Shown: one piece after another, positions 42-41,184 of the stretch
Layout of the letters: every line of letters begins with the position of its first letter
Position numbering within the stretch: position 1 is the stretch's first letter
Assembly: GCF_032191835.1 (NCBI RefSeq)
Contig: NC_083234.1
Coordinates: forward strand, 55,924,001 to 55,988,000
Reading direction: 5' to 3'
DNA length: 64,000 nucleotides
Origin: Heteronotia binoei
Lineage: Eukaryota
Program-made: the position numbers and the translations under genes
Notes under the pieces: generated by a model
Told to the model about the DNA's origin: nothing
Seen by the model: only the letters and a program-made list of their open reading frames with translations
Database searches by the model: none

Positions 42-13364
<13,323 letters not shown>

Positions 13365-13371
13365 AAAGGCT

Positions 13372-13377
13372 TTTAAT
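13372..13377 (-). terminator. Likely TUBB4B poly(A) signal ATTAAA
   Basis: Plus-strand TTTAAT, ~130 nt past the TUBB4B stop. Confidence 0.55.
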
Positions 13378-13453
13378 GTCTGTACAGCATCAGACAGATG
13401 ACATCAGGAAGCTGGAAGTGCAGAACAAAGAAACCAAGAACAAGGTTGGAATG

Positions 13454-13459
13454 AATAAA
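13454..13459 (+). terminator. Likely CIMIP2A poly(A) signal AATAAA
   Basis: First AATAAA after the TGA at 13362-13364. Confidence 0.65.
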
Positions 13460-13508
13460 GTCCATACAAGCTTTGAACAAAATTTACAGGTGTTAACAGC
13501 CAGCGGTC

Positions 13509-17480
<3,972 letters not shown>

Positions 17481-18028
17481 ACATGACTTTTTTCTTGACA
17501 ACACTGCCACAAACGTGGCCTAGTAACATTTGTCAATTCATACGCATGCCACATTGCTGCACAGCGTTGAATATAAGTGACTGATACAGGAATGTTTATG
17601 TTGTCTAATGATTAGCCAACATAAAAAGATGTCTTCAACCTCACCTTCCCAAAACACTTTTAAAGAATAAACTATATGATTTATTTCCCCTCTCCCAGCA
17701 CTTAGAATTTTCCCATTAGGGTGGTGTCAGGCTAATCAGGCACACTCAGCCTGATCTATCTCCAGTGAGGATAAAATGAAAGGGAAGAATTATATAAATA
17801 ATTGTATTCTCACTGGGGAGTAAGGCAGGGTATTAAGTAAATACACAAGGATAGTTGGGAGCTTAAAGAAGACTATTCCACTGCATCTCCACAAGAGTCC
17901 GAGGGAGGGAGGGGACAGAAAAAACAAGACCTTACCAATCTATCAAAACCCAAACCCAGGTCTCTTCTCTTTCAAAACCTGGCTGAAATTATGCAAACGG
18001 GAATAGAATCATAGGGTTGGAAGGGACC

Positions 18029-18415
18029 TAGGGTTGCCAGGTCTGTATCTGAAGACTTTGCAAGTGGAGCAAGGAGAGGGCAAGGTTTGGGGTGAGGAGG
18101 GACCCCAGCATGTTACAATGCCATAGAGTCCACCCTTTAACAGGGCTGGATCTTGGGGGGGGGAGCAGAGGGGGGTGCTTGCCCCGGGCGCCGACAGGGG
18201 GGTGCCAAATTGGGTATGGAGCCCATAGTATTCTATGGGACCATAAAATATAATGGCCAATAAGGGGGGCCTTTTTATTTTGCCCCCCCCTCAAAAAACA
18301 TGTAGATCCGGTCCTGCCCTTTAAAGCAGCCATTTTCTCCAGGGGAGCTGATCGCTGCAGTGGAGATCAGTCATAAAAGCAGATCTCCAGGTCCTACCTG
18401 GAGGCTGGCAACTAG
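18029..18415. mobile_element. TAGGGTTGCCA-family MITE inside a CR1 3' tail, containing a nested MITE
   Basis: Starts TAGGGTTGCCAGG; CR1-tail sequence ATAGAATCATAGGGTTGGAAGGGACC precedes it and GGGTGATCTAATCCAACCCC follows it. Confidence 0.75.
18141..18316. mobile_element. Nested hAT-type MITE
   Basis: TIRs CAGGGCTGGATCT / AGATCCGGTCCTG, perfect 8-bp TSD CCCTTTAA. Confidence 0.85.
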
Positions 18416-19385: not shown

Positions 19386-19961
19386 TTAATTTCCTTGAGT
19401 GCCCATAAGAGTTTTGGTATTATGTGAAAAGTGAAAAAGTACTTTTTTCCTGTTTTCTCTATCCCATACATAATTTTGTAAACCCCTGTCATGTCACCCC
19501 TCCATTGTCATTTCTCCATGCCTGAAAGCACTAACCTCTTTAGCCTTTCTTTAGCCTTTAACTAAAGAAAGGCTTCACCCTCCAACTTGCATAGCAAAAG
19601 TTTTAAGCTGATGGTCACAGAACATGAGCCAAGACATAAAAAGTCAATTACCTGAACAGGCACCATTTCAAGTTTTGGTATGGAGAGAACAAAGATTTCA
19701 TAGTAGGGATGCAATTGAGCAAGTCCCAACCATCTGATCTCAGCCCTGAATGATAGATATACTGATGTTTCTGGCTTTTGTGTTGCAGTTGGCTGTTTTT
19801 AAAAACCTAATTAAAAACTTGGAAATATACATCTCATCTTCTCCACAATTTTTCATTTTAAAAAAGCATATTTTATGAAAATTTGTTGCAATCCTTTTAT
19901 AATATGACTATACTCATGATAGTATTGTTTATTTCTTTTCCCTCCAAGTGCATCTGGGAAA

Positions 19962-22900: not shown

Positions 22901-23505
22901 GAAGGTGGACCATTAGAGGGGGACAGCATGAGGACACTGCAAAAAAACAAAAACTTGCTCCACTTTAGACACCAAAGTGGAGCAAGAACTCCATGTGGGT
23001 ACATAGCCTCAGAATATTCTTACTGTTGTGCTGGTTTATTGCTATATAAAACAAACCAACAAAGCCCTACAGTCCTGTGATACACTAACTCACCCTTCTG
23101 TTTGCTCCTCCATAGGAAGATTTGAATCAGCCCTAGGAAGTGAAAAAGTAGAGAAGCGTTAAAATAGGGAAAGGATGAGGCTTCTGTTCCTTCTGGCTCT
23201 AGCAGAGGTTTGATGTGACAGGCAGCAGAGATCTATTCCGGGGAGAGAAGAAAAGGTCATTGTGAAGACTCCAATGTGGAGGGTACTGCAATTTAACAAT
23301 CAGTAGAGGGTTCTTTCTCTAGTCTCTTTTCCCTGTCAGTCTTGAAAGCTGTAAAGAAGAGCTGGCAATTCTGCATACCCTTTCTGAACAGCTGGGTATG
23401 AAACATACGGTTGGATCCCACCACTCATCAATGGAACGTGTAGATGGTTGCGAATCTTCCTCCACAAAAATTTATTTCCAGGGTCATGGAATAAATGTGA
23501 CCTAA
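19962..23505 (+). CDS. Candidate small membrane protein with putative coiled coil, 3 exons, 181 aa
   Basis: Exons 19962-19972 (within 24-nt exon 19949-19972; TTTCTTTTCCCTCCAAG / CAG|GTATTT), 21866-22234 (ATCTTCTTCAG / CA|GTAACT), 23340-23505 (TTCTTTCTCTAGTCTCTTTTCCCTGTCAG); all joins phase 2; long hydrophobic stretch LFGFMFLRFLCLLFLSLILGLFLMIILGLLG; AATAAA at 23490-23495. No homolog recognised. Confidence 0.5.
20092..20475. mobile_element. hAT MITE
   Basis: CAGGGGTGTCAAAC ... TTGAGACTCCTG, 8-bp TSD GCCTAAAT / GCCTAATT. Confidence 0.8.
22432..22852. mobile_element. hAT MITE
   Basis: CAGGAGTGGCCAAAC ... GTTTGGCCACCCCTG, perfect 8-bp TSD TACTAAAC. Confidence 0.9.
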
Positions 23506-23894: not shown

Positions 23895-23955
23895 TCAATC
23901 ACAAGGCTGATAGACCATAGGGGTCTTGCTGTCGTTGGAATAAATTTTCTCATGG
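23895..23955 (-). CDS. Novel TM gene, terminal coding exon (HEKIYSNDSKTPMVYQPCD-stop)
   Basis: Long pyrimidine tract ending TTCTTCTCCAG, phase-2 start, EKIY motif like upstream exons. An AG 13 nt upstream would instead give ILLQP-stop. Confidence 0.65.
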
Positions 23956-26900
23956 CTGGAGAAGAATGCTGAGGAGACGGGAATGCAGGAAAGATCCATG
24001 TTCCTCATGCCTGCAGACCTTGGGATCCAACCACAGTATCATGCCATTATATATATATTTTCAGTTGCTTTGTGGGAATTGGTTAGGTGTAGGTTATGTG
24101 CGGGAAGTTTGCATGTGCACAAGCACACATACACGAAACACTCAGCCCCCAGCCTTGCCAGAAACCTGTGAGCCACTTCCCCACACAGCCTCCAGTTTGG
24201 CTGGACAGCAGAATTTCCACATGTTCACAATTGCCATCAGTCACAGTTTGCCAACTGTGCAAAAGGGCAAATTTTTGTCACTTAATGCCATCAGCCTCCC
24301 TAAGTTTCTGGTATCTACAGAGTCTTACTCTACAGATGGATTCCTAGGGCGAGAGAATCTCTTCTCTACAATCTTATTTCCCCTGCTTACATAGATTCAG
24401 ACTGTGGTCCACCAATATTTGCATATGAATGCTCAGGCTGGGACCTATCAATGCTTGCATACACATGCTCCGGAGAAGGGCTGGAACACAAGGACAGGGG
24501 GAAGGAGAAAGTCTCTCTCTCTCTCTTTTTAACAACAATGCCATCATTGTAAACATAGCAAATATTTAACTATCATCGTAGATATCCCACTACCTTTACA
24601 ACATACACTTCTACATACAAGGATACACAACTCGGTGGGTCTCCAGGTAAATTCCCATTTTGAACAATCCTTCAAAGGCTAGTTCCTAGGAGTTTTAAAG
24701 TTCCTAGTTCCAAAAAGCACTCCATTACAGCAATAGTGCAGAACAACTGTACGAAAACTGTAGCAATTGATAACTGTAGGATAACTTGCACTAGCTTTTT
24801 AAGAGGGCAATGCTCTAAATTTTTGAAGATATAACTCCACACACTCTGAATGTAGTGCAGCGGAGAAAAGATGGACACATGCCAAACAATCAAGCAACAG
24901 CTTTGACAAGCCATAAAATGGCCTATTAAAAAAGTCAGAAGGAAGCCAGCATCCTATAACCAAGCTGTGTCATTTTACTTACAACCCCACCCCCCTACAG
25001 GGTCTGAACAGTCGGTCTTCCACAAAATAATTACCAGGAACAATTATTCAGTCCAAAATCTTTTAAAAATGGGGCATAATTGCCTGAAGAATCCAGTGGT
25101 GAAACATGCAAGAAAGTTCCTGGTCCAGTTCCTGGTCTCTTCAGTAAAAACCACCTCAGGCAGCAGGTGTCTGGGTAAAAAACCCAAAAAACCCCTCTCA
25201 GCATGAGACCCTGGAAAGCCACTATTTGGAAAGACTGTGGCTCAGGGGTTTAGCACTTGCTTGACGTGTAGAAGGTCCTCAGTTCTCTCTTTGGCATCTC
25301 CACTTAAAATGAGGCCATAGCTAGACTCACCGGTTGATAGAAAGTGATCAGAACAGACAATATTGAGTGAGCTGCCCCAATAATGAAGTTTCATCTGAGT
25401 GCTTCTTTTTGCTGGTAGAATGCAACTTTTTGGAGCCCCAAATTACATGCACAGCTGTGCATGATCAAGCACGCAGTGAGATCTTGAGCAGGCTTCTTAA
25501 CAAGACTGCCCCTCATCTTGTTTGCTACACTCACATAGAAAAACGTGGTGACCGTTGCACATCAGCGTAGGCCTTCTCAGGAGTGGATCTGGAATGACAA
25601 GAAACCTATTTCAAGGGCTGAAGGAGCAAAACCCCACCAATGGCAGTCAGAAACAAGACTGGGCCAAGCAAGGTAGTGAGTGGGTGGACAGTGAATTGGG
25701 CATAAACCTGCACAAGAGGAGACTGGCATGTGCACAATGGAGTTTAGTTAAATTCATTACAAAAATCCAGTGGTGGAAGCTCAGCAGCAAAGAACTTGCT
25801 TGGTGTGCAAGAAGTCTCTCCACTAATGAGGCTGTCCAAGACAACAGAAAGCTGCTGGCTATCAGAACAGACAATACTGAGTTAGAGGACCCAATAATGA
25901 AATTTCAGCGGAGTGCTTCTTTTTGCTGGTAGAATGTTAATTTTTGGAGCCACAAATTACATGCACAGCTGTGCACAGCCAAGCAGGCAGTGCACAAGTT
26001 TCTTAGCAAGACTGCTCCTTCATCTTATTTGTCAGACTCACGTAGAAAAAGCTGGTGCTCCTTGCATACTGACATAGGACTTCTCAGGAGTGGATCTGGA
26101 ATGACAAGAAACCAATTTTAAGGGCTGCAGCAGCAAGGCCCCACCAATGGCAATCAGAGCAAGACTGGGTCAAGCAGGAAATTCGCAGACACAAAATTGG
26201 GCACAAATGTGCATGAGAGCACAGTGGCATGTCAATGCTGGAATTTCATTGGATCCATTACAAGAATATAGTGGTAAATACTCAGTGGTAGAGAACCTAT
26301 TTGGTACACAAGGAGGTTCCCAGCTCAGTTCCTGGAGTCTCCAATTAAAAGGATCTCAGGGACACTCCCTGGTATCTCTAATTAAAAAGATCTCAAGAAG
26401 CAAGTGTCTGTGCGTGGGGAAAAACCTCTCTCTCATGAGAACCTGGAAAGATGCTATTTGGAGAGGCTGAAGCTCAGTGGCAGAACGGTTGCTTGATATG
26501 CAGAAAATCCCTGCTTGATCTTTGGCATCTCAACTTAAAATGAGGCTGCAGCAAGACTCTCTGTCCAAGATAACAGAAAACTGCTGGCTATCAGAATAGA
26601 CAATACTGAGTTAGAAGATCCCAACAATGAATAGACAATATTGAGTTAGAAGATCCCAATAATGAAGTTTCAACTGAGTGCTTCTTTTTGCTGGTAGAAT
26701 GTTAATTTCTGGAGCCGCAAATTACATGCACAGTTGTGCACAGTCAAGCAGGCAGTGAACAAGTCTTTCTTAGCAAGACTGCTCCTTCATCTTATTTGTC
26801 ACACTCACGTAGAAAAAGGTGGTGCTGGCTGCATACTGACGTAGGGCTTTGGAGGAGAGGATCTGGAACGACAAGAAACCAATTTTAAGGGCCGCAGAAG

Positions 26901-29900
26901 CGAGGCCCCACCAACGGCAATCAGAAACAAGACTGGGTCAAGCAGGAAATTGGCAGACACAAAGTTGGGCATAAACTGCATCTGAGAGGACAGTGGCATT
27001 CAATGCTGGAATTTCATACGATTCATTACAAGAATATAGTGGTAGATACTCAGTGGTAGAGAACCTGTTTGGTACACTGGGAGGTTCCCAGTTCAGTCCC
27101 TGGAATCTCCAGTTAAAAGGATCTCAGGGACACTCCCTGGCATCTCTAATTAAAAAGATCTCAAGAAGCAAGTGCCTTGCGGGGGTGAAAAACCTCTCTC
27201 TCATGAGAACCTGGAGAGATGCTATTTGGAGAGGCTGAAGCTCAGAGCCAGAGCACTTGCTTGACATGCAGAAAATCCCTGTTCCATCTTTGACATCTTG
27301 ACTTAAAATGAGGCCACAGCAAGACCCGCTGTCCGAAACAACAGAAAGCTACTGGCTATCAGAATAGACAAAATTGAATTAGAAGACCCCAATAATGAAG
27401 TTTTAGCTTCTTTTTGCTGGTAGAATGCTAATTTTTTGAAGCCACAAATTACGTGCACAGCTGTACACAGTTGAGAAAGCAGTGAGTTCTTGAACAAGTT
27501 TCTTAGCAAGACTGCTCCTTCATCTTATTTGTCACACTCACGTAGAAAAAGGTGATGATGGAAGCACACTGATGTAGGACTTCTCAGCAGAGGATCTGGA
27601 ATGACAAGAAACCAATTTCAAGGGCTGCAGCAGCAAGGCCCCAACAGCCATCAGAAGCAAGACTGGGTCAAGCAGGAAATTGGCAGACACAGAGTTGGGC
27701 ATAACCATGCACAAGAAGACCCCAGGATGTTGACGCTGGAATGTCATTGGATTAATTACATGCTTTTGCTTTCTCACTTGCTGCTTTTGTGTTCACAACT
27801 CCTGCCAACTGTTTTACAACCACTGTAACCGTTTTATCATGGGGTGATGATTTTCAGCCTCATTTTAATGATATTCTTTGACTTAATTTGAATTCATCAT
27901 AATTTTTGGCAGGTCTCATTGCTACTGAAGTTTGGAAAATGCACCTAGAATTTTTATGATGGAATACACAATATAAATTATCTGAAATAAGTACACATAC
28001 TACATTTTATTTATCCTTCTAAGAAAGTCTCCTAAGCATACAAACAAAACTTCACACACCAGACAAGTTGGGAGGAGACAGATGTTCCGCATCTCCACCG
28101 ATGCTGAAAACCCTGTTTTCATAAATGTCTCCATCTAATGCCATCTCTTAGGACTCTAACTAGTCATTTCTACTTCTAAGATAAGCCCCCAAAATATCCT
28201 ATGGGTCATTATATACTGTCAAGAAATTTCTCTCCCTCCCTCCCCACCATGTCTTACGTCTGGACTTGATGAACCCCTCCAGAGGTATCGAACTCATTTG
28301 TTATGAGGGCCAGATCTGACACAAATGGGATTTTGTAGGGCCGGGCAACATATGTTAAAAATGTAATGTGAGATAGCAGTAATATAAACTTTATAAAGGA
28401 CTCGATAAACACATTTAAAGATGTTATTTTTAAACTTAAAATACAAATGTGTTTAAAACTCTTGTAATATTTTGTTTAAAATGAAAAGGTGGGGGGAATA
28501 GTGGGATCCAGCAATGCAATTTTTAAAACAAAATGTCAAGAAAAAGCACAAGGATCACAGCAGAAACTAAAAATATAAAATGCTCTGAGCCTGGGAAAAC
28601 AATGAAATGGCATTGCAAGCTTCTCTCTACCCCCCCACCCCCCGGGTATACTCAGATTGGCAATGGACCTCCAATGTAATATCCTCTTTTGACTGTGGAT
28701 TCCCAGGTTAGAGTACTCATTAGGTCAGGTCCATTGAGCAGAGACAAGCTGGGTCAAAGCATCAGCCCTTTATTTGCAAGGATACAACTCCAGGAAGCAT
28801 GAGCATCAGCTGGCTATGCCCCCACCTTTCCATTTTCAACCAAATATTTCAAGAGTTTTAAGCATTATTTCATTTTATGTTAAAAATAATATCTTCAATT
28901 GTGTTTGCCTGTGTCCTTTATAAAGTGTATATCTCTGCTCCCTCCCATTACATTTTATGGCACGCGTGGCCCAGCCCCATAAAGTTCCATTTGTGTCAGA
29001 CTTGGCCCTCCTAACAAATGAGTTCGACACCCCTGTCCTAATGCAAGCAGTTGGTGGCACTGTGCCAGAGGAGAAGCGACAGAGAAACCCCTCCAAGGGT
29101 TGGATGAGCAGCACTTCTTCATACGGAGACGAAGGATGGTTGCTGGGTGCCTAAACGCTTTAGAAAGCTGAAAGGAGTTGCTCTTCTGGGTCAACAGAAC
29201 CACTCCACCACACATGCAATCAATAAATAAAATAGGAAGCACAAAAGGTTTCTTTGTGACGGGCAACTGGTAAAGTCTGAAGTGAGATGAGAATGACTGT
29301 TGATCTTTCAAAGCCTTGCTGTAGAAACTCCGGCGACATATTAAGTGGCTAGACATGCTTTTCTGTGTTAGGCTGCCAGCACACAGCTGCCAAGAGACTG
29401 ATCATTAAGGCTATGTTGCCTGGCCTGCTACCCTCTCTAAGCCAGCTATTATTTAGTTTTTCATTGCTGTCTTGACAACATGCTGAACATGTTATTTCAA
29501 TAACTGGAAATTTCAAAGACTCTGATGCCTGGGTTGCAATAGCGTCAAGTCATTCCATCCTAATTTTACTACTTATATTCCAAATAGGCAAAATAGAAAC
29601 CACTTTCTCTCACTAATAATAATAATTATTGTATGGCAGTCTGTGTAGCACAGCCAGGAGATCCTACGATTGTCTGGCAGTCGGAAGTTCTAGCTTTTAG
29701 TGTTATGTACCACTAAGTGGCGAGCTAGACTTGTTTTTATGGCAAGAGATGTTTCAGAGGTGGTTTGCCTATGCATCCTGGCCCTGGTATTCCTTGGAGG
29801 TCACCCACCCAAATACTAGCCAGGACTGACCCTGTTTAGCTTCTGAGATCTGATGCAACTGGGGTAGCCTGGGCTATCCAGGTCAGGGCACATTCTCCCA

Positions 29901-32900
29901 CTCATATCCAAGGAGGGAATCAATGCAACTTAGAGCACCTGCTTTGCATGCAGAAGACCCCAGCTTCAGTCCTTGGCCACTCCAAGCGAATGGATCTCTG
30001 GCAGAGCATGTTGGAGAAGACTGTTCTTTGCCTGAGATCCTAGAGAGTCACTGCCAGCCAGAGAAGGAGTACTGAGCCAGAGAAGGAATACTAAGGGGAG
30101 GGATGGCAGCTCAGTGGTAGAGCATCTGCTTGGTAAGCAGAAGGTCCCAGGTTCAATCCCCAGCATCTCCAACTAAAAAAGGCAAGTAGGTGTAAAAAAC
30201 CTCAGCTGGAGACAAAACACATGATCCATCTGCCTTTTGGCAGGGAAATGTAGCACATAAAGATACAGCAACAATTCCAAAAGTATTATGCCCCCAAATT
30301 CACCCAGCACCTTAATGTTCTTTCAAGCTGCGGCGAAGTTTCCTTGATGTCCCACTCCCTCCACCACCCTCATGCAGCAGTGGGCAGCAAAAGAACCATC
30401 CTCTTGCTATTTCAACTTACTTGGCTGCTTCCCCTGCTCCATCAGAACTTGGATATTTGGTCTCTGAGCGGCGTCTGAAATCACAGAAAGCACATTTCAC
30501 TGCCACGTTGCCAAATGCAATAAACACTTCTCCATGCAACTCTTGCTACTACTGAGAAAGCAGAGGGCACTTGCAGAGGGCACCAAAAATCCATGGAGTT
30601 TCCCTTGCATTTTCCTTATGTTGCCTGCCACCTCAGCCATTTTCTCTCTCCACTATCATAGGGTATTTTCTTTTTGAACTGGGCAGAGATCTACTTTTTT
30701 TTTTTTTTTACAAAAATGAAAGCTGGGGATTCAGAGGTACTGCAGACCATGGCTAACTGTGCTGCAATAATCTTGCAAATGTTAACTTTTAAAACAGCCA
30801 CGAAAAAGTTGCCTGGTGTGCATATGTGAGTGTGGAGGGGGAATGCCAGCCATGGGGGGCAGAGGAAAGGAAAATGGTGCTTCAAAAATATGCACATTCC
30901 TATCCACCTAGCATGAAAAGGCACTACCTGCAGTCTCTCCAAAAAGTTCCTTATCAGATCAGGTCAAGGGAAGACTACAGCAAAAAAACAATAAAACCAG
31001 GTTTTACCCTGAATACACAACCTCCATGTGGAAGCTACCAAATTATGCTTTTATGTCTGAGGCTAACACTATCTAACCAACGTGGTGCAGCGGTTCATTG
31101 ACAAGGATCCAGGCGATCCAGGAGACCCATGTTTGAATCCTGACTGCTACAGATTCTTGGGTGACCTTGGGCCAGTAAATGTCTCTCAACCTAACCTATC
31201 TCTTTAGGTTGCTGTGAGGATAAAACAGGAGAGAAGGACAAGCTTGTAAACCACTTTGGATCCCCACTGGGAGAAAAAACAGGGCATAAGTATCTAAAAT
31301 AAAAATAAATTCTATAATTCCAACTTGGCAGAAGGGAAAAGGGACAGTTAAAAAGGAGGCCTCTGTGTAATTGACAATAACTAAGTACCAACACAAGCAA
31401 TTGTTACTTGGAATACGATTCAGCATCCAGAGAATCCCAGCTTTCATTTAAAAGAGAAATGCATTTCTAGTCCTCACAATCATGAAAAAGAAGTTTAGAA
31501 GCACACAAGCAATGCTTTTTATAGTATCCAGAGTCAGAAGAAAAGGCAAAGGTGGGGGTTTCAGTGGATTAGATAGGTTCATGGAAGACTAGTCTATCAA
31601 TGGTTACTAGCCACAGTGACTGAGGAGAACCCCCACATTCAGAGACACTAATTGTCTGAATCCCAGAGCCAGGAAGCAACATCAGAGGAAGGCCTCTGCC
31701 TCTTTGCCCTATTGTTGGTTGGCCACTGTATGAGACAGGATCCTGGACTAGATGGGGCACTGGTCTGATTCAGCAGGGCTCTTATCTTCTTCTGCTTGTC
31801 TCCCTCATAATTAGCAAAACTAAGGGCATGCAAATCTACTTAATGAATAGAGGTCACTTTTCTGGATGTGGGAGAACCAGATCAAGGAAACAGAACAGCA
31901 TGGTCTCTAGACAACCCACAGCAACACCAATAGTGCAGACATTGTGTAATTTAAGGAGAGCAACTTGCTGGATCACGCTCACGGTCTGATTCAGCACAAG
32001 GCAGTATTCGGTTTTCGGTACTGACCAAAAGTCTGTCCCACTTCCATACCATCTAGTCTTTCCAGCTCACCTAGGACCAGGGTGCAGGTCTTTAGGATCC
32101 ACGTATGAACTCTCTGCAGCCCTAGAATGACAGAAGGGAGTCTTCAGTGTGGAACTCACAGAGAAGATGCAAAAGACCGTGTAAAACAGCTTACGATGTC
32201 CCATTTCCTTCTCTATCACTGTATAAACTATGCAGATTATTCAAGGCATAGGCTTGTAAAGAAGTTACAGACCAGCTCTGCTTAGGTTAGCCCTAAACTG
32301 TACAGAGTTTACCTCAATTACCAATCATATGGTTGAACAGAAGAAACCAACCAGAGCTAGCAATGCACTGGCCATTAGAGTCACTGGGAAAAGTCCTGGA
32401 GGGGGGCAATGGCCTGCGGACTGCCCCCTCACCAGAGCCAACCCTAGCCCAAGTGAGGGATGGCTCTCACCCTACATGGCACGAGTGGCAGCTGCCACAA
32501 ACTGGTGACCATAACAAAACCCCAAAAAGCAAAATTTACAAATAGAATATAAAACTGACCTATTATGTTTAAAGTCGCCTACATAAGAGGAAAAAGTTGG
32601 CATAAGAAAACCAAAGGCTGCCCAGCAGATGGGCAAAACTAAAACAGGAATTGGGAAGTTGGAGGTAGAAACAGCAAGGATAAGAAATTCAGAATGACCC
32701 CTAAATAGTATTAGGCAGTCCTTTTGATAACTCTGGTCCCAAGCCATAAATGACAGATTTCATAATCATAGACAATTTGAGCATACAATGTTCAGAAGCT
32801 TCTTTAACCTTTATAACCATGGGGTCAGTCAGATTAGAGAGAGCCAGTTTGGTGTAGTGGTTAAGTGCGTGGACTCTTATCTGGGAGAACTGGGTTTGAT

Positions 32901-35900
32901 TCCCCACTCCTCCATTTGCACCTGCTGGAATGGCCTTGGGTCAGACATAGCTCTCGCAAGAGTTGTCCTTGAAAGAGCAGCTGCTGGGAGAGTCCTCTCA
33001 GCCCCACCCGCCTCACAGGGTGTCTGTTGTGGGGGAAGAAGATATAGGAGATTGTAAGCTGCTCTGAGTCTCTGATTCAGAGAGAAGGGCGGGGTATAAA
33101 TCTGCAATTCTTCTTCTTCTATTACACCAAACAGGTGGGGTTTTTTTCTTGGAAATATGCAAGCAATGCTAGTTAAAGATCAGAAAGCAGTCAGGCTTAA
33201 TTTAACAGTTACAAAGTGGGCCTTCAGCATCCCATAAGGCAGATCTATATGTCTCCTGTAACATTATTTATAATAAATGAAATTACTTTGTTTAATTTAA
33301 TTGATGCCCATTGCAGAAATTCTCTTTTATTGGCTCAGAGTTTTGGTAAATTATTATTTTAAAAACCCTAACTGAAAACAGACCTTTCCTTAAAATACAA
33401 CTGCTACTGATTATAAGTAGGGAGGGTAGAACAACTTGCTACTCACTCCTTCATTGATTTGTATTTAGATGATCTTGGGGCCAAATACACAGGCTCTGGA
33501 CGGCGTCTGAAATCACAAAAAGCTGGTCTAAGTATCTTGCCTTAAACAGCCTCCTCTGAGGCCACCGTGTGGATGTCAAACCAGAACTGCTAAAAAAGGA
33601 TATTCAGTTGACTCCCAGAAGCTGGATTCCATAGATCCAATCCACTAATGGTGGCATTTTTCTCCAGTTCAGGGAGCCATCCCCTAGCACAAGAGGTGCC
33701 TGAGTTGGGAAGGCTTCTTGCCTCAAAGGAAAGTGTCACTGTTAGCAACATGAGAAACCATGAAATTCAGCCACACACTTTTGTGAGAACTTGGGCAAGA
33801 GACTATCAGAGGGTTTTTCTTGACTTCTTTTGCCCCAGGCTTGTAATAAAGTAGGCAATACTCTTGGGAATGCAACTTTGCTTTCTCTTTCCACCAGGGC
33901 TTTTCTTGTAGAAAAAGACCAGCAGTAACTCATTTGCATATTAGGCCACACCCCTGATGTTACCATTGTTTCACATGGGGCTTTTTGTAGAAAAAGCCCT
34001 GCAACAATCTAACTAACAACTGTAATAACTATCTACAACTAACTACAACCTACAAATATAAGAGAAAAAAAGTTCACCGACCGAAGCAGAAAGATCGACT
34101 GATCAGCGCGGCGGTCAGAAGAGAACTGGCGGGATGACCGCGCCTGTCGCAGTGAGCATGCGGGGTGGGGCTCCTGGGCATGCGCACTGGGGCGTCGGCG
34201 CGGAAATCCGCAGCTTTTGAGTTTACCGATCGAGATCGGCGCAGGCGCCTTACTCCCATCAGTGTGATGCACAAAGACCACGAAGAAGATCTGCATTCCT
34301 GCTCAAAAAAAGCCCTGCTTTCCACTAGGCAAGGACAGACAATCGCCAGGCAATGCCATCATCAGAGTTATATAGTATATCTAGTAGTAAAGTGGGTTGG
34401 CTCAGACCAAAGTGACAAAAATCAGATGGCCACAGACAAAATAAGGAATTCAATGTATTTGGGATATTCTCCGACAATGTAGAAAATATCACCTTGTAAA
34501 TTAGGCAAAAGGGAAAATAAATGCCCCAACACTGACTGAGTACACTTCAGAAGGCACAGAATGTTCAGAGAGCCAGTTAAGGGGGGGTGGGATAAATGGC
34601 TTGCTTGAGTCGCTGGGATACAGAATCCTGGAAGGGATAGGAGTTTCCAAACTGATTATTCCTCCCAGCCCTACCACTTGCCAGAAGCATTTTGCTTCTC
34701 CTAAGTAGCAAGCTTGATGGCGAAATGCCTAAAAAGCTGCCCACATAATCAGAGTATACAGAAATATACTCACTTTCAAATTCAAGGTGGAGGAAAGGGG
34801 TGGAAATACCGAAAATGACCAGAAGAGGACTGAGCATGCTCATTGCCCTCCAGTAGGCATGAATTATCAGCAGTAGTTGGGTATTGGAAAAGCTCCACCT
34901 ACTTGAGTTCCTAACAGCTTAAAGTATCCCAGAAGCAGAGATTTAAGCTGGGGGGAGATTTTCCTCTGTCCTCCCCCTCCACTCTCCCTCAATTTGTTTC
35001 ACAGATTTCATAAATATATGCATGACATTTCTCTAATGATTCCTGCCACTAGAGCACATGACAGATCATAGCCCACATAAACTCACAAGCCAAAGAGATC
35101 TGTTCAGATTGCATAATTTTGCAACAAGTTTTTTTATGGTGCAAAATTCAGAATATTCTTCATCTGAATTACAGAAATAAATTGCTCAGAAGTATACAAA
35201 CTGCTACTGGTTTGGCACATGCAATTTACGGGATTGGCAGGAGGGGCCTTGTTGGAGGAGCCATTGACTAGACTCTGCCATGAGGCTACTGTGAACTGTG
35301 CTCCCTGGTGCCACCAACCCCAGAGACTGGAAGTGCCAATGGCTTCATTCCTAGATACATTCTGGACCAGCACATTAGACCCTAGGAATCTCTGACATTA
35401 ACACAGATCAGTTTTTAGACTTCATGGTTGCAAAGAAAGACTAGAAAGTGCATGGACACTGCCTTCTGTAATCTCAGAAGTTAGAGAAGCAGCTTAGCAA
35501 GGTTCCTAGCAGTCATAATACGACTTCAGCTCTGCACCATGTGCTCACCCTTGCCATCGCTCTGGTGTGACCTTTTGCATAATTCAGATTGTGTAATTTT
35601 GCAAGAAGTTTTTTATGGTGCAAAATTCAGAGTATCATTAGTCTGAATTACAGAAATAAATTGTTCAGGATTATACAAACTGCTACTGGTTTGTCACATG
35701 CAACTTACGGGATCGGCGGGAGGGCCCTTGTTGGAGGAAGTGAGTCTTTTCTATCTTTTTTCTCCTTTTTGTCTTTTTTCCTTGGACACAAGACAAAGAG
35801 ACCCCTTGTTAATACAGCTCTGCAGTAATGGGCTACCAAACAGGATCTTGCTGCCCTGACATATCTCTAGGCCCAAGATCAATATGCTTACTGCTCTAAA

Positions 35901-38900
35901 AGGGCTCCAATGTACATGAACAAAACAGGTAGGCATCCACAATGGTGTTACCCCAAAAAGTTCTGAGTAAACCAACTAATTCCCTGATCTGCCATCGTAA
36001 GAAAGGGAAAGGGAGGTTGCTACTTCTTTCTGTATGACTATCACTTGCAGTGACCACTAGTGCCCAGTCCTAGGGGCACACGTGAGACCACAGATGAACA
36101 TAGGAAGAGCCCTGCTGGATCCGAGCGCAGGCCCCTCTACTCCAGCATCCTGTTGCCAACGATGGCCATCAAGAGACGTCCAGGATAGCTTTGAAGCTGC
36201 CTCATAGCAATGGTGTTCTGTTAAGCTCCCTTTGAACACAGAGGCTTCATTCTGTCATCATGGTCTAATAGTTGTCAACACACTTCCGTTTAAATTGGTT
36301 AATTCCACTGTTAAAGGACACAGCAGTGTACTGAAAAAAAAAAATGTTAGCAGCAGATACTGTGAGCAGCAGAGTTACAGGGCCCACAGTTCAACAGCAG
36401 AGCTAATGCCTTTCATTCAGAAGGTTCCAGATTGAATCCAGTACCTTGGGTACAAAACATGGTGGGGGGGAGATGGGCCAATGGCCTGATTCTACATAAA
36501 GCAGAGTTATATGTTCAAGAGATGCTGGCAAAAGAAGGGTATAGTTAGGGGGTCTCATCAGGAATAGCAAGACTTACAACAGGCTTCCCTCGCTGAAGAA
36601 CAGGAACATGAGCCATGACTGCACTGGGGACCAGGCCTGTAGCTGCGAGGGCGCCTGTGGGGACACAGCCCCCCCAACTTCTGGGTGAGGCCCCCTGACT
36701 TGGGGCCCCCAAACAGCCTCCAGGGCCTCTGCTGCATCCTGGAGCATAGGACAGGGGGCAGAAGCAGTCCCCAGCCTCCCCCTCCAGTTAAAAGAGCTGC
36801 GGGCCGATCAGCTGATCAGCGGGCCCTTTAACCCAGCACTGGATTCAACTGCTCCATAGCTATTGGTGCTCCTGACTTGGCTGGTGACGATGAGTCAGGG
36901 TGCACTAGGACCCAGTAGAGCAGACCCTACCAGCTGCCTGTTGTCATGGGCTGCAACTCTCTCTGGAGGTGGCAGGGATCCTCTATAAATTTTAGCAGCA
37001 TTTTTACATCTAAAAGCTTCCCCGCCACAAGTAAATGTTCCATCTGACTGCAAAACTTCCCCCTTCTAATGCATATCTGAAGCTCTTAATGTTCTTTGTA
37101 ATTCACAAGGTAAAACTCGCTCCCTCCCCCACACACGCAGGGGAAGAGCATTTCCTCTTTTAAGCCCTCCCCCACCTTCCTCGATCTCTCTAGCAGGCCA
37201 TTTATTTAGCTTCAGCTCCACAAGGCTGGTTCCTACCAAGAGAATGACTCAATGTATTTTTAAATAACAAGACACCCCGTATGTGTGTTCACTATAACTT
37301 GTGAACAGGACTTGTGTGTGTGCATGTGTGTTTGTGGTGGAAGGGGGGGGAGGGGGAAGGCTGGCAATATGCTTTCATTACAGTTATCCTGGATTTGGGT
37401 AGCAGAACTGTGATATATGGGCTTTAATTCATAGAGTTAACAACTTTGGCTGGTAAATTCCTGGATATTTTTGGTGGATCCTGAGGAAGGCAGGGAGCTC
37501 AGTGGCATGTAAAGTCAACATCCCTCCCCCCCCCCCCCCAAAAAAAAGCCATTCTGTACTGGGGAAATTATCTCTGTAGTCCAGAGAACATTTGTAATTC
37601 TGGGTGATCTCCAGGCCCCACCAGGAGGTTGGAAGCCCAATACCTTGGGAGTAAACCCACTGAATAAGAGGACTAAAGGTAGTTCTGCTTTCCATTGCTT
37701 CAGGTGACCATCCTGTAGTTTGCTTTAATTTTCACACACCCCCGCCCTCCCAACTTTGTTATTCCAAGGAAGTTTCCCATCCAAATACTTGCCAGAGCAA
37801 TTTCAAGTTTTTGAAAATTGGTTATTTGGGGGGGTGGGGGCAGTAGGGAGTTTGAGTGTTCTGGGAACAGAAACAGATTTGGGTGGGTAGCAACGCTGGT
37901 CTGAAGTAATAGAACAAAATAGAACAAAATTTGAGTCCGGTGGCTCCTTTAAGGCCAACAAAGTTTAATCCTGGCACCAGCCAGTGTGATGGTAGGTCAG
38001 GGTGGCCATGAGAGCAGCTATGGATTGGGGCCCTTGAGTGCCCCCCCAAAAATCAAAGGCCCCCTGACCTTCCAAATTCTGGATACGTGGCTGCTGGGGA
38101 CCCACTACAGGGATGGAGGTGGGGTGGCGGCTGATGTAGCAAAACACAGGGAAAAGGAAGGCCCCTGATTTTGAGGCCTCCAATGACTCACCATTGTTTG
38201 TTCATCAAGCGCAGGATGACAACTGCCACCAGCAGCAGAACCAATGTGGAGAAGAAACCCAAGAAGGCCAAGGAGCCTATGATAGCCACCAGCGTACTCT
38301 TGCTCAACACCTCAGGGCAAATGCATGTTGTTTGTGTTGCTATGAAAGAAAGGGGAAGGCCACATGAGAAATCATTCTCCTGAATTCCCAAGCCTTTCCT
38401 TCCAGCAGGGAAGCCAGTTAAAACTCTTCAAGATTTTAGTCACTAATTTCCTGTCTCCACATGACTCCCAGGCAACATAGAGCATTTACCCCCAAATCAA
38501 CTTGCTCTCCTCTTAGCCACATCTCACGCCCACCCCCAGAACCCCACCTACCTCACCTCCATAGTCAAACGACTGATTCTGGAAATGAAAGATGTCTTAC
38601 TTGGTAGTAAGGCCTGCCGGTTCCCAACTGACACCTCGCCGGAATCTTCAGGGTACTATGGGTGATAAAACTGAGTAAGTTCATGATCTTGTTTTGGTTC
38701 CAAGCAACACATCTCCATGGCCAAACATGAATGACCAGTTCAAACTCTGGCATAATTTATTTAAAACATTTAAATGCCATCTTTTCACTCAGTACAGGGT
38801 CAAAACATTAAAACAAATTTTAAAATACTTATCTATAAAATGACAAGAACAGTGTAACAAAACACAAACGTGTAGACACATACACTTAAAGATGAAGGAC

Positions 38901-41184
38901 AGTCAAACAGAAATGTTCACTCACTTGCGGAAGCCAATGATAGAGGGAAATCAACAAAACCTTCTGGCAAGGGAATTCCACCGTTTCAGTGCCATGACTG
39001 AGAAGGCGCTTTCTGGGGTGCCACCTGTCTAAGCTCAGACGGCAGAGGCACCTGCAGCAGGGCCTCCAAGATGACTGTAGCTGATAGGTTCATATGGGAG
39101 CAAGTGGTTCTTAAAGGATAGCAGATGCAATGAAAATTCTTTCTTTGCCTTTGGAGATCTGCTGCCAGGCAAACTGAACAGCATTAGGCTAGAAGTTACA
39201 ACAGGCTGATGGGAAACAAAGCTGTTCCACATTTCTCCTCAGGAGATAATTCCTTTGTAAAGCCTCTGAGTGTCCATGCAGCATTTTTAAGTGTTCCAAG
39301 CATATTACGTTCATCGGCCACTATCATTATTCCTACAGCACACTGTAATCACAGCAGAAGCAAAATTCAAGCCCGGGGCCTCCTGCTTTGTACTTCAGTC
39401 TTTTGTATTCTGTGCTACACTAGCTTCCCAATCAAAATCTCTCCAGCCACAGTTCTTTCTTATTTACCTTGAACTATTAATTGCTCTACTGAACCCTCCT
39501 CTGTCCCTGCACAGAGGATTTAAGGTGACACTCATTCAGTGGCATTTCTGTACTCACCCTCCTTAACATCCTTATTGGTCTATGGACAATATTTTCACTA
39601 TCTTCTGATTCATCTGAAAGGGTACTCATTTGGTCTCCTTTTGCTGATAGTTCTTGGGAAGCAAAACTGCGTCCCTGCATTCTAGAGGTCTCTGCCCCAT
39701 TTGTTTTTGCTGGAAATCAAAGACAGAAGATTCACACTTGGTTAAAATCCAATAGGAGAAATGATCAAGTCCCTTCCATGGTTGAACATTGAGCCACTTG
39801 TACAAGACATGAGATACAGGGCTCCCCACAGATCAGTGTTCTCACCCAACACTTAATTAGATCATCTGGAATGCTGGAGTTGGGTGCCCTCAGTATAGTG
39901 AGAACACACAACCATATAGGTCTGTTCCTGAGTCTTCAAGAAGCTGCTGCCTCAGCTGTGAACCAGCGCTCAGTATTAAGTTGGATCCATTGCCCCATAC
40001 TTCCCTCTAAGTTACTGATCCCTCTTAAAAGAAAACTTTTACAATGTTCTGATGATGTTTAACAATGACACAAATAATTAGGATCAAACTACCTGCTGGA
40101 AAAGTGCCTAGAGAATTGTGGATAGTGCCCATCTGGTTACTCTGTTCCACTATTAAAAATATTGGGAACCTGCAAGTCATCTTCTTAAATATATTATGGG
40201 GAAGGAGCTTCCTTGGGGCGTCATATCTGTATCTTTGTAACTGATTTAAAGTGGAGGAACATGACATGGATTTATAGCCCTATTGGCTAGGATCCAAAGA
40301 AGCACTCAACTACTTCATGACATCCATGAGAGGTAGGCAGTGGTGGTATTTGGGGCTTTTCTTTGTACTACAGCATGCTCAAACATGTACCAACCCAAAG
40401 AACTTTTTAAAAACCCAACTGTGATAGGGCATGGAGAGGGACACTGCTGTTCAAAACAAAGGTAATCAAGAACCCCACTGGGCATATCCAAGCTCTTGGA
40501 TGCACCTAAAGTGGCTTGCTGGATCACAGTCATTATGAGTTTGCAAGAATAAGCAGTACAGCCACCTGGGAAAGGGCTACAATTACCTGAGCATAATCTG
40601 GCAAAAATCACTGAAACTATGCACTTATATTAGTGAAAGAAAAATCAGCAACTTAAAGGCAACTAACAACCCTAACAGGACAGTTTGTTCACAACTGGAG
40701 CACCACATTTCATTATCATTTGTGAACTTCTATTTCAACATATTTCTTCCTGGTTCTTGAGATCAGTTGAATAGGCCTTGCTTTTGTGTGTTTATATGAG
40801 AACCTTCTTTGATATGGCACCCACTTTGTGGAAACAAGATAGTGGGATTTCTCAGGATGTTATTTCTGCACCCCAAACAATTTTCTGAAGACTTTAGTAC
40901 TTACAATAGAATCAAGAATTACATGCCATTCTGCCCATTTCTATGGTCAATGCACCAAATCTAAACAGTGAAGAGCCAAAGGCTCCCCCACAAACCCAAA
41001 ATCTAGAGTGTGTGGAGGAAAACAATCCATGGTCATTTGCTAGAAAAATCATAAGCCTTTCAAGATCTCAACAACTACTGAGAAAGTTACCACAATCCAA
41101 ACAAACTCTAGAGTGGAACTCACATGAAGATGAGGCAATTACACTCATGGAGAATACCAAGCCACCCAGACATGCCAACAGCAT
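23895..41184 (-). CDS. Putative single-pass type I membrane protein with TMEM210-like TM module and long tyrosine-motif cytoplasmic tail (15-17 exons, ~344-363 aa)
   Basis: Exon chain 41124-41184, [40587-40610], 39558-39709, 38601-38655, 38192-38339, 36578-36592, 35709-35780, 33447-33506, 32071-32121, [31408-31440], 30421-30474, 27542-27595, 26809-26862, 26042-26095, 25535-25588, 24391-24480, 23895-23955. Every exon has AG/GT boundaries, phases match in series and the joined frame is open to a TGA at 23895-23897. Brackets mark optional symmetric exons. Confidence 0.8.
24391..24480 (-). CDS. Novel TM gene, double tyrosine-motif exon (PSPEHVYASIDRSQPEHSYANIGGPQSES)
   Basis: Very strong acceptor CTTTCTCCTTCCCCCTGTCCTTGTGTTCCAG, donor TAT|GTAAGC, 90 nt, phase 2 to 2; internal PEH-x-YA-x-I repeat. 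Confidence 0.85.
25535..25588 (-). CDS. Novel TM gene, repeat exon D (STPEKAYADVQRSPRFS)
   Basis: Acceptor GGTTTCTTGTCATTCCAG, donor TAT|GTGAGT, 54 nt, phase 2 to 2. Confidence 0.8.
26042..26095 (-). CDS. Novel TM gene, repeat exon C (STPEKSYVSMQGAPAFS)
   Basis: Acceptor GGTTTCTTGTCATTCCAG, donor TAC|GTGAGT, 54 nt, phase 2 to 2. Confidence 0.8.
26809..26862 (-). CDS. Novel TM gene, repeat exon B (SSPPKPYVSMQPAPPFS)
   Basis: Acceptor GGTTTCTTGTCGTTCCAG, donor TAC|GTGAGT, 54 nt, phase 2 to 2. Confidence 0.8.
27542..27595 (-). CDS. Novel TM gene, repeat exon A (SSAEKSYISVLPSSPFS)
   Basis: Acceptor GGTTTCTTGTCATTCCAG, donor TAC|GTGAGT, 54 nt, phase 2 to 2. Confidence 0.8.
28280..29035. mobile_element. 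hAT-type element ends (complementary termini) with AT-rich interior
   Basis: CAGAGGTATCGAACTCATTTGT ... ACAAATGAGTTCGACACCCCTG; no TSD found, may be two partial copies. Confidence 0.55.
29735..29890 (-). mobile_element. 5S rRNA-derived SINE fragment
   Basis: CCACCCAAATACTAGCCAGGACTGACCCTGTTTAGCTTCTGAGATCTGATG. Confidence 0.65.
29915..30215 (+). mobile_element. Two tandem Squam3-like SINE fragments
   Basis: Decayed copy ~29915-30095 followed by a younger head GCTCAGTGGTAGAGCATCTGCTTGG...GGTTCAATCCCC. Confidence 0.7.
30421..30474 (-). CDS. Novel TM gene, tyrosine-motif exon (RRSETKYPSSDGAGEAA)
   Basis: Acceptor GCTTTCTGTGATTTCAG (paralogous to the 33506 acceptor), donor CAA|GTAAGT, 54 nt, phase 2 to 2. 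Confidence 0.8.
31408..31440 (-). CDS. Novel TM gene, optional exon (WDSLDAESYS)
   Basis: 33 nt, phase 2 to 2, open, but moderate acceptor (TTTCTCTTTTAAATGAAAG) and donor (GTAACA). Confidence 0.4.
31565..31790 (+). mobile_element. CR1-type 3' UTR fragment
   Basis: ATGGAAGACTAGTCTATCAATGG...GGACTAGATGG...GTCTGATTCAGCAGGGCTCTTA; related pieces at ~36015-36260 and ~50790-51090 (minus). Confidence 0.6.
32071..32121 (-). CDS. Novel TM gene, tyrosine-motif exon (AAESSYVDPKDLHPGP)
   Basis: Acceptor CTCCCTTCTGTCATTCTAG, donor TAG|GTGAGC, 51 nt, phase 2 to 2. Confidence 0.8.
32837..33120 (+). mobile_element. Same SINE family, full length
   Basis: Near-identical to 6536-6830. Confidence 0.8.
33447..33506 (-). 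CDS. Novel TM gene, tyrosine-motif exon (RRPEPVYLAPRSSKYKSMK)
   Basis: Acceptor GCTTTTTGTGATTTCAG, donor GGA|GTGAGT, 60 nt, phase 2 to 2. Confidence 0.8.
33896..34001. mobile_element. Short MITE (CAGGGCTTTT...AAAAGCCCTG)
   Basis: Terminal inverted repeats; related sequence nested at ~7892-8000. Confidence 0.6.
34050..34315 (-). mobile_element. CpG-rich DIRS-like terminal repeat fragment
   Basis: Isolated CpG-dense block with TCTTCGTGGTCTTTGTGCATCACAC and TGCGCATGC motifs reminiscent of reptile DIRS1 termini; assignment from memory, no TSD seen. Confidence 0.5.
35101..35740. repeat. Two diverged ~160-bp copies (35101-35262, 35582-35740) containing the 3' half of the RALPPIP exon and its donor-side intron
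   Basis: Shared GGTGCAAAATTCAGA...CTGAATTACAGAAATAAATTG...TATACAAACTGCTACTGGTTTG...TTACGGGAT. Confidence 0.85.
35709..35780 (-). CDS. Novel TM gene, basic/proline-rich exon (KKDKKEKKDRKDSLPPTRALPPIP)
   Basis: Acceptor CTCTTTGTCTTGTGTCCAAG, donor CCC|GTAAGT, 72 nt, phase 2 to 2; RxLPPxP class I SH3 ligand. Confidence 0.8.
36578..36592 (-). CDS. Novel TM gene, 15-nt microexon (C-EGSL-L)
   Basis: Acceptor GTTCCTGTTCTTCAG, donor GTT|GTAAGT, phase 2 to 2. Confidence 0.65.
37429..37480 (-). CDS. Novel TM gene, possible alternative terminal exon (WIHQKYPGIYQPKLLTL-stop)
   Basis: Strong acceptor CCCTGCCTTCCTCAG, phase-2 start matching the TM exon donor, TGA followed immediately by ATTAAA. Confidence 0.45.
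38192..38339 (-). CDS. Novel TM gene, transmembrane exon (TQTTCICPEVLSKSTLVAIIGSLAFLGFFSTLVLLLVAVVILRLMNKQ), TMEM210-like
   Basis: Acceptor CTTTCATAG, donor ATG|GTGAGT; long hydrophobic helix preceded by CxC; resembles recalled human TMEM210 ([23 protein letters not shown]...); position next to the ANAPC2 3' end matches human TMEM210. Confidence 0.85.
38601..38655 (-). CDS. Novel TM gene, ectodomain exon (YPEDSGEVSVGNRQALLP)
   Basis: Acceptor TTTTATCACCCATAG, donor CAA|GTAAGA, 55 nt, phase 0 to 1, bridging the phases of its neighbours exactly. Confidence 0.7.
39558..39709 (-). CDS. Novel TM gene, ectodomain exon (KTNGAETSRMQGR...IVHRPIRMLRR)
   Basis: Acceptor TTTGATTTCCAG, donor AGG|GTGAGT, 152 nt, phase 1 to 0, open frame. 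Confidence 0.7.
40587..40610 (-). CDS. Novel TM gene, optional 24-nt microexon (LIFARLCSA)
   Basis: Branch-like CACTAAT, acceptor GTTTCAG, donor CAG|GTAATT; phase 1 to 1; would extend the signal peptide. Confidence 0.4.
41124..41184 (-). CDS. Novel TM gene, candidate exon 1 (signal peptide MLLACLGGLVFSMSVIASSS)
   Basis: ATG at 41184, 20 hydrophobic/small residues, phase-1 donor T|GTGAGT compatible with the next exon. The 5' end is the least certain part of the model. Confidence 0.65.

Follow-up and report, generated by a model that had tools for sequence, protein, structure and literature searches.

Gene content of the locus and gene model

We analyzed a stretch of 64,000 nucleotides from the gecko Heteronotia binoei (assembly GCF_032191835.1, contig NC_083234.1, positions 55,924,001 to 55,988,000; hereafter the window), which contains no runs of N and whose introns are about 78-84% identical at the nucleotide level to those of Gekko kuhli, its nearest public relative. 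Three genes were identified on its minus strand: a beta-tubulin gene, ANAPC2, and, between the two, a gene at 23895-41184 that encodes a predicted membrane protein with a tail rich in tyrosine motifs. This last gene, the subject of our analysis, lies directly 3' of ANAPC2 and on the same strand. Our predicted model comprises 14 exons with AG/GT borders throughout and one open frame of 339 amino acids (aa), ending in a TGA at 23895-23897; the four upstream exons (signal peptide, acidic ectodomain, an exon with YPED, and an exon with a CxC motif and the transmembrane (TM) segment) were placed with guidance from homologues. The predicted protein consists of a signal peptide, an acidic ectodomain of about 75 aa, one TM segment and a 201-aa tail with 12 tyrosines. 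The succession of signal peptide, TM segment and lysine-rich stretch supports a cytoplasmic placement of this tail. The tail exons are short, join an AG acceptor to a GT(A/G)AG donor, and are all of identical phase (1 base, whole codons, 2 bases), so that any subset of them can be joined in frame. We are highly confident that the gene and its tail are real. The exons, all on the minus strand, are listed below with the tyrosine modules (Y1 to Y7) that they carry.

41124..41184: exon 1, signal peptide with its start codon (20 aa + 1 base); ATG, hydrophobic stretch and GTGAGT donor; matches the Hemicordylus N-terminus and has a conserved counterpart at 8272-8332 of the Gekko kuhli locus L001
39558..39709: exon 2, acidic ectodomain, ending IVHRPIRMLRR; tblastn match to P0001 (67% identity, E 3e-16); AG/GT borders
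38601..38655: exon 3, YPEDSGE..GNRQALLP; tblastn matches from seven homologues; AG/GT borders
38192..38339: exon 4, CxC motif and TM segment, ending NKQ+TG; 13 squamate relatives by HMMER (best E 5.8e-18); omega 0.06 versus Gekko kuhli; weak Pfam TMEM210 match (E 0.14)
35709..35780: exon 5, W, a Lys/Asp/Glu-rich stretch and RALPPIP (SH3-type core); AG/GT borders; in-frame indel versus Gekko kuhli
33447..33506: exon 6, RRPEPV-YLAP and K-YKSM (modules Y1 and Y2); YVVP and YTTM in Gekko kuhli, with all indels multiples of 3; PEHTYxxV and GYERL in other squamates
32071..32121: exon 7, AAESS-YVDP-KDLHPGP (module Y3); tblastn match to RAARGIYLSASELHPGPR of Sceloporus and others; YLDP in Gekko kuhli
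30421..30474: exon 8, RRSETK-YPSS (module Y4); AG/GTAAGT borders; frame and tyrosine kept in Gekko kuhli (YASV); YQNV is the aligned module in other squamates
27542..27595: exon 9, array copy A, YISV (module Y5); 54 nt within a repeat unit of about 750 bp; other squamates have a single homologous exon, PE(N/S)EYIxP
26809..26862: exon 10, array copy B, YVSM, from the comparison of array repeats
26042..26095: exon 11, array copy C, YVSM, from the same comparison
25535..25588: exon 12, array copy D, YADV, from the same comparison
24391..24480: exon 13, PEHV-YASI and PEHS-YANI (module Y6, doubled); fits an ITAM pattern (see below); tblastn match to the double module of Rhineura (E 0.004)
23895..23955: exon 14, terminal, HEKI-YSND...MVYQPCD followed by the TGA stop (module Y7); in-phase acceptor; position equals that of the terminal exon (R/H)(D/E)xHIYEEV of other squamates

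Motifs of the predicted tail

An original prediction, made from the letters of the window, had described the tail as a docking code for SH2 and SH3 domains. All tail motifs that it named are present on the minus strand, each inside an exon with AG/GT borders:

35708-35728, minus: RALPPIP
33476-33487, minus: YLAP
33452-33463, minus: YKSM
32094-32105, minus: YVDP
27565-27576, minus: YISV
26832-26843 and 26065-26076, minus: YVSM (two copies)
25558-25569, minus: YADV
24450-24461, minus: YASI
24414-24425, minus: YANI
23931-23942, minus: YSND

Two further sites had gone unmentioned, YPSS in exon 8 (30474-30421) and the last tyrosine of the protein (MVYQP). A second YISV at 34757 was rejected as noise: the open reading frame that holds it has no splice sites, and it does not belong to the gene. 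The statement that the tail holds no immunoreceptor tyrosine-based activation motif (ITAM) has to be divided, since exon 13 of the window (YASIDRSQPEHSYANI) fits the pattern YxxI-x8-YxxI (YASI-x8-YANI); the match is not conserved in the family, the homologous modules of other squamates (YSNA/YVNA, YSGA and others) not fitting the pattern.

We compared motif counts in the 201-aa tail with those in 20,000 shuffles of it. Glutamate stands at position -3 of 9 out of 12 tyrosines (shuffle mean 0.77), a count reached by none of the 20,000 shuffles, and the recurring PE-x-x-Y pattern that had been pointed out is borne out by five PExxY in the tail against a shuffle mean of 0.12. Enrichment over the shuffles was also found for YxxM (three sites, P 0.0006; P 0.009 if the array is counted as a single exon) and YxN (two sites, P 0.003). 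YxxP, with two sites, is at chance level (P 0.56; the tail is 15% proline), and a single RxxPxxP is not unusual for the tail composition (P 0.21), so the significance of this core derives from its conservation and not from composition. A motif scan against shuffled controls, which had been named as a check, thus upholds YxxM, YxN and Glu -3, and does not uphold YxxP or the lone RxxPxxP. The pattern Yxx[LIVM] occurs at 7 of the 12 tyrosines.

The juxtamembrane cysteine (NKQC) of the original prediction turned out to be a tryptophan: the TM exon ends in AAC AAA CAA TG, and the first base of the lysine-rich exon, a G, completes a Trp codon (NKQW). The corresponding junction in Gekko kuhli is DKQW-KKEKK, with R or K in place of the tryptophan in other squamates. 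The proposal of raft localization through a palmitoylated cysteine is not supported, as the window protein has no such residue. We rejected a mini-exon at 38104-38069 that would give NKQC, given its weak sites, its position in DNA absent from Gekko kuhli, and its absence from all homologues. This spurious mini-exon is contained in 38131-36632 (minus), a portion of about 1.5 kb in the intron that follows the TM exon; this portion has no counterpart in Gekko kuhli.

A family of squamate proteins with the same architecture

An exhaustive HMMER search with the 49-aa TM exon recovered 13 cluster representatives (E 5.8e-18 to 3e-6), and a family profile search found 23 proteins. All homologues with a source name come from lizards, snakes or an amphisbaenian, and they are annotated as 'uncharacterized' or 'hypothetical', with one 'proline-rich protein 36-like'; examples are LOC121936330 of Sceloporus undulatus, LOC123028202 of Varanus komodoensis, LOC103281776 of Anolis carolinensis and K2H54_041004 of Gekko kuhli. 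In the searched literature, we found no paper mentioning the LOC identifiers of the family. Two narrower searches added nothing: a 78-aa read-through of the TM exon gave no match in a word-index search, and a trimmed family profile (TMEM210 size range) gave only known squamate pieces. All scores of an ESM Atlas search with the Sceloporus homologue were at most 0.83, and its structure matches are meaningless because the protein is disordered. By these sequence searches, the family is unnamed and detected so far only in squamates.

Homologues searched against the window by tblastn matched the predicted exons, with about 50-88% identity for the CxC+TM exon. Common to the family are the CxC+TM segment, an RxxPPxP core after a lysine-rich stretch, and the same order of tyrosine modules Y1-Y7. 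The window protein has CxCPE(V)L followed by a TM segment that ends in (K/R)Q(R/K/W)K, and the window gene carries the ordered tyrosine modules, one per phase-symmetric exon; in Sceloporus and Varanus, too, each tail module is a separate exon. Like the other members, the window gene lies between ANAPC2 and beta-tubulin on the strand of ANAPC2: the order in Sceloporus and Varanus is SSNA1, ANAPC2, the family gene, tubulin and a CMI2B-like gene, and in Gekko kuhli ANAPC2 precedes the family gene. Most non-gecko members have one cysteine inside the TM segment, unlike the window protein, which has none there.

The Gekko kuhli locus (L001; GCA_051903775.1, CM122947.1), whose compared sequence ends about 140 nt before array exon A, retains exons 1-8 in an open frame, the AG/GT borders being preserved and the length of every indel divisible by three. 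The public Gekko kuhli model is truncated: its product, KAL8174255.1 (142 aa, flagged UNVERIFIED_CONTAM), begins inside exon 2 and ends at the exon of the SH3 core. The locus itself also has intact copies of exon 1 (8272-8332) and exons 6-8 (13256-18033).

In the ectodomain, a basic motif, IV(R/H)R(A/P)(V/I)R(R/K/M)..(Y/F)PE(D/E)S...GHRQ, is conserved just before CxC and the membrane (39558-39709 and 38601-38655, minus; homologues P0003-P0013). A convertase might cleave at its paired arginines, and a disulphide-linked dimer might form through the two cysteines.

Conserved tyrosines and turnover of the residues that follow them

Across 13 non-gecko tails, the seven consensus tyrosine columns reach 92% identity and the remaining 135 columns 61% (Mann-Whitney P 3e-4), and the 25 columns that are at least 85% identical include 9 proline, 5 tyrosine, 3 arginine and 3 glutamate columns. 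Glutamate at -3 recurs at the tyrosines of the family. RxxPPxP is kept in 16 out of 17 tabulated squamate sequences; the exception, RRPPIPP of Erythrolamprus, is still RxxPxxP. The description of RALPPIP as a class I SH3 ligand is consistent with this conserved RxxPxxP pattern and with the 7/9 identity of RALPPIPRR to RLP2 (RALPPLPRY), which is the class I ligand solved on the SH3 domain of Src in PDB 1RLP (PMC4877006); the class assignment is qualified by PPIPRR, which also fits class II PxxPxR. The docking code had been tied to conservation of the tyrosines and of the residues after them in orthologues. On this point the tyrosines are kept and the +1 to +3 residues turn over, as seen module by module:

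Module Y1: YLAP in the window; YVVP in Gekko kuhli; Y(M/T/L)xV in other squamates
Module Y2: YKSM in the window; YTTM in Gekko kuhli; YERL in other squamates, with no tyrosine in 4 of 5 colubroid snakes seen
Module Y3: YVDP in the window; YLDP in Gekko kuhli; YLSA, YLNA or YLSV in other squamates
Module Y4: YPSS in the window; YASV in Gekko kuhli; YQNV, YQNL, YGNV or YQSA in other squamates
Module Y5: YISV, YVSM, YVSM and YADV in the window; Gekko kuhli sequence ends before; one YI(S/T/G)(P/V) in other squamates
Module Y6: YASI and YANI in the window; Gekko kuhli sequence ends before; Y(A/V/S)N(I/V/M/A) in many other squamates, YTSA or YSGA in others
Module Y7: YSND plus 10 residues in the window; Gekko kuhli sequence ends before; HIYEEV/I and then a stop in nearly all other squamates

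Recurrence across squamates is limited to YEEV at the C-terminus and to the pYxN-type sites of Y4 and Y6; pYxN is a Grb2 motif and pYEEI a Src-family SH2 motif (PMC2194117; PMC2888578). YxxP, YxxM and YxDP at modules 1-3 are kept within geckos only. A partner-by-partner docking code is not supported by this comparison, as YKSM corresponds to YERL, YVDP to YLSA, YPSS to YQNV and the array to a single YI[ST][VP] in other squamates. Because the +1 to +3 residues turn over, the assignments to p85, Crk and Grb2 would at best be gecko-specific. The window gene differs from the other squamate members in the fourfold module Y5, the doubling of module Y6 into an ITAM-like pair, the YxxM at Y2 and Y5, and the YSND plus 10 residues that replace the C-terminal HIYEEV. 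We found no YEEV-type terminal exon on either strand of the window.

Duplication and skipping of tyrosine cassettes

The array consists of four tandem 54-nt exons (25.2-27.8 kb) spaced 507-767 bp from start to start. Acceptor, GTGAGT donor, length, frame and tyrosine are preserved in every copy; other squamates have one array-type exon. Within the array, the exon body is more variable than the flanks (23/54 versus 59/220 variable columns, P 0.02), and the proportion of nonsynonymous differences (pN) is about equal to or above that of synonymous differences (pS). We considered whether the array unit is a dispersed repeat and rejected this, since within the window it was found in the array only. 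Exons 6 and 8 are older duplicates of each other, because they have their acceptor region and first codons in common. Module copies also occur elsewhere, with Y4 twice in Anolis, three Y3/Y4-like copies in Rhineura and three Y6 copies in Podarcis; module duplication is thus recurrent in the family and not special to the Heteronotia binoei genome.

Annotated isoforms in Podarcis, Rhineura, Pantherophis, Notechis and Hemicordylus (sets P0014/P0009/P0015, P0016/P0004, P0017/P0020, P0019/P0023 and P0024/P0007) differ in precisely one or a few whole tyrosine modules, each 15-38 aa long. Such whole-module differences are what phase-symmetric exons permit.

Evolutionary rates between the two geckos

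We used the Nei-Gojobori method to estimate the ratio of nonsynonymous to synonymous substitution rates (omega) between the window and Gekko kuhli. The CxC+TM part has an omega of 0.06, the signal peptide and ectodomain one of 0.54, and tail exons 5-8 one of 0.86. The tail exons differ at 25% of aligned columns, compared with 12.5% in their 60-nt flanks (P 4e-5). This excess over the flanks might suggest positive selection on the tail, yet the overall intron divergence between the two geckos is 16-22% and omega is 0.86, so positive selection is not shown. For the same two reasons, we read the tail as drifting near-neutrally around fixed anchors.

Neighbouring genes and other features of the window

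13509-14585, minus: last exon of the beta-tubulin gene (Pfam)
~44-57 kb of the window, minus: ANAPC2 (match to PDB 5g04_N, E 4e-68)

The beta-tubulin gene region (13509-17500) lies downstream of the motif-bearing gene, in the same arrangement as in Sceloporus and Varanus. Neither of these two species has a gene annotated at the position equivalent to 19949-23505 of the window. ARAGORN reported a tRNA-Thr(GGT)-like sequence at 30099-30171 (plus strand), in the intron between exons 8 and 9, which is probably the head of a tRNA-derived short interspersed nuclear element; comparable tRNA-like pieces are also found in the array units. At 35130-35259 (minus), 479 bp downstream of exon 5, there is a 90% copy of the 3' half of exon 5 and the start of its intron, situated within about 1.5 kb absent from Gekko kuhli. 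It looks like a dead partial duplicate of exon 5, because it is without an acceptor, its donor is GTAAAT, and it has a 1-nt deletion.

Proposed function and alternative explanations

Taken from sequence, the reading that we favor, and consider somewhat more likely than not, is that the gene encodes a scaffold resembling an adaptor, so far undescribed, to which a Src-family kinase would dock; its tyrosine cassettes duplicate (fourfold here) and are skipped in annotated isoforms. The tail would serve as a disordered scaffold like those of transmembrane adaptors (for the Sceloporus homologue, disorder is predicted from an Atlas model with a predicted local distance difference test (pLDDT) value of 0.47), its lysine-rich stretch would lie against the inner membrane leaflet, and its proline core would dock the SH3 domain of a Src-family kinase. 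The docked kinase would then phosphorylate the E-x-x-Y sites, and SH2 proteins would bind to the phosphotyrosines. A further anchor, for the SH2 domain of a Src-family kinase, would be provided in most squamates by the C-terminal HIYEEV, making this a two-point dock; the window gene has YSND there. The set of SH2 partners would be lineage-specific, not a fixed code. Docking through a Src-family SH3 domain followed by processive phosphorylation, as the original prediction had supposed, can reasonably be inferred from these motifs.

Several observations weigh against the favored reading. Exon use in Heteronotia binoei is predicted only, including the splicing-in of all four array exons. The tail omega of 0.86 is near-neutral between the two geckos, and the best-conserved SH2-type motif of the family, YEEV, is lost in the window gene, which has HEKIYSND plus 10 residues instead. 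The window protein has no cysteine at or after the cytosolic end of its TM segment and no juxtamembrane CxxC. Moreover, a signal peptide and an ectodomain of about 75 aa set it apart from classical adaptors, in which the ectodomain is very short and leaderless.

The same motifs might be taken as a fixed and conserved docking code, with YxxM for PI3K p85, YxN for Grb2 and YxxP for Crk, Nck or Abl, combined with a palmitoylated juxtamembrane cysteine for rafts. The motifs are present, with YxxM and YxN above shuffles, and YxxP, YxxM and YxDP are kept at modules 1-3 within geckos and YxN at modules 4 and 6 in many squamates. However, the +1 to +3 residues at homologous tyrosines are not kept outside geckos, YxxP occurs at chance, 2 out of 3 YxxM sites are recent copies of one exon, and the cysteine is a tryptophan; we consider such a code unlikely. 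We give about the same low probability to the idea that the tyrosines work mainly without phosphorylation, as YxxΦ sorting or endocytosis signals for clathrin adaptors or through other contacts, and that the proline core binds a non-kinase SH3, WW or EVH1 protein. The match of 7 out of 12 tyrosines to Yxx[LIVM] and the disordered tail (Sceloporus model, pLDDT 0.47) agree with this idea, but seven conserved tyrosines, a recurrent Glu -3, which is a feature of tyrosine-kinase substrates, and a C-terminal YEEV in most species exceed what sorting needs, and the Φ position is not kept, with many YxxA, YxxP and YxxS in the homologues.

Another possibility, which we judge to have an appreciable but minor chance of being correct, is that the tail is made only in part, with at least one of the four array exons (and perhaps exon 8) being a pseudo-exon or rarely included, so that the protein has fewer than 12 tyrosines. 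Exon use is predicted, other squamates have a single copy of the exon, annotated isoforms skip tyrosine cassettes, and pN in the array is about equal to or above pS; yet all four copies keep AG, GTGAGT, an open frame, 54 nt and the tyrosine, and exon 8 is kept in Gekko kuhli. Finally, the gene could be decaying in geckos through relaxed constraint, as might be read from the tail omega of 0.86, the replacement of YEEV by YSND and an extension, and a Gekko kuhli model of only 142 aa. The 14 exons without a stop or frameshift, the splice sites of exons 1-8 that are intact in both geckos, the indels in multiples of three, the TM omega of 0.06, and the retained tyrosine residues and SH3 core all argue against decay, which we regard as very unlikely.

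Extending the favored reading of a Src-docking scaffold to the whole family, we tentatively suggest a squamate-wide Src-docking adaptor, defined by RPLPPxP and a C-terminal YEEV, whose phosphotyrosine sites would sit on separate, phase-symmetric cassette exons, so that its SH2 partners would be rewired through exon duplication, exon skipping and point change. Geckos would show this rewiring in the four cassette copies, the new YxxM and ITAM-like sites, and the change of YEEV into YxN, and mammalian TMEM210 would be a reduced positional counterpart. This wider proposal has, in our estimation, a clearly smaller chance of being correct than the scaffold itself.

If the scaffold reading holds, squamates have an undescribed transmembrane adaptor that public annotation lists as 'uncharacterized' and that is truncated or missing in gecko annotation, and this would make it a concrete candidate for reptile immunology and cell signalling. 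The gene would also be a natural example of how a signalling tail evolves, with the anchors (tyrosine, Glu -3 and the proline core) held, the specificity residues drifting, and motifs gained and lost as exons. As this gene shows, motif-to-partner assignments made from a single species are not trustworthy.

Comparison with known systems

Human TMEM210 is a gene that we take to lie directly 3' of ANAPC2, and the squamate family gene is the 3' neighbour of ANAPC2. On the mammalian side, our only reference for this position is a 500-kb block in cattle, which holds TMEM210, TUBB4B, SSNA1 and LRRC26 (PMC6304683). Mouse Tmem210 has 4 exons and testis-enriched expression, and its knockout is fertile (PMC9226692). 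The CxC+TM part of the window protein and of 7 out of 9 homologues gives weak collinear matches to positions 1-50 of the TMEM210 profile (Pfam PF15195; E 0.006-0.2), with 13.1 bits for the window TM exon and 17.5 bits for the best homologue, all below the gathering cut-off of 27 bits. No mammalian TMEM210 was recovered among the matches of the HMMER, trimmed-profile and family-profile searches. A link to TMEM210 may be suggested by gene position and by sub-threshold Pfam matches only.

The closest functional likeness is to the transmembrane adaptors of leukocytes (defined in PMC2194117 and PMC2888578). LAT, PAG/Cbp, LIME, NTAL/LAB, SIT, TRIM and SCIMP have a single TM segment and a long, disordered tail with multiple tyrosines, as the window protein is predicted to have. 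The adaptor tails carry pYxN-type and Src-family SH2-type sites, like those of the squamate family, and mouse LIME has an RxxPxxP SH3 motif as well (PMC2194117). In Pfam and ESM Atlas searches, we found no sequence similarity of the family to these adaptors. Raft-type adaptors have a juxtamembrane CxxC, unlike the window protein, in which the junction reads NKQW.

A two-point dock for Src is seen in p130Cas, which combines an SH3 site (RPLPSPP) with an SH2 site (pYDYV). Unlike p130Cas, the squamate protein is membrane-anchored, and the window species is without the YEEV half of such a dock. In the manner of p130Cas, most squamate members pair RPLPP(V/L/I)P with a C-terminal YEEV/I in one disordered chain. 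Overall, judged from its sequence, we rate this gene as an unusual architecture within what would be a known functional kind, the transmembrane adaptor.

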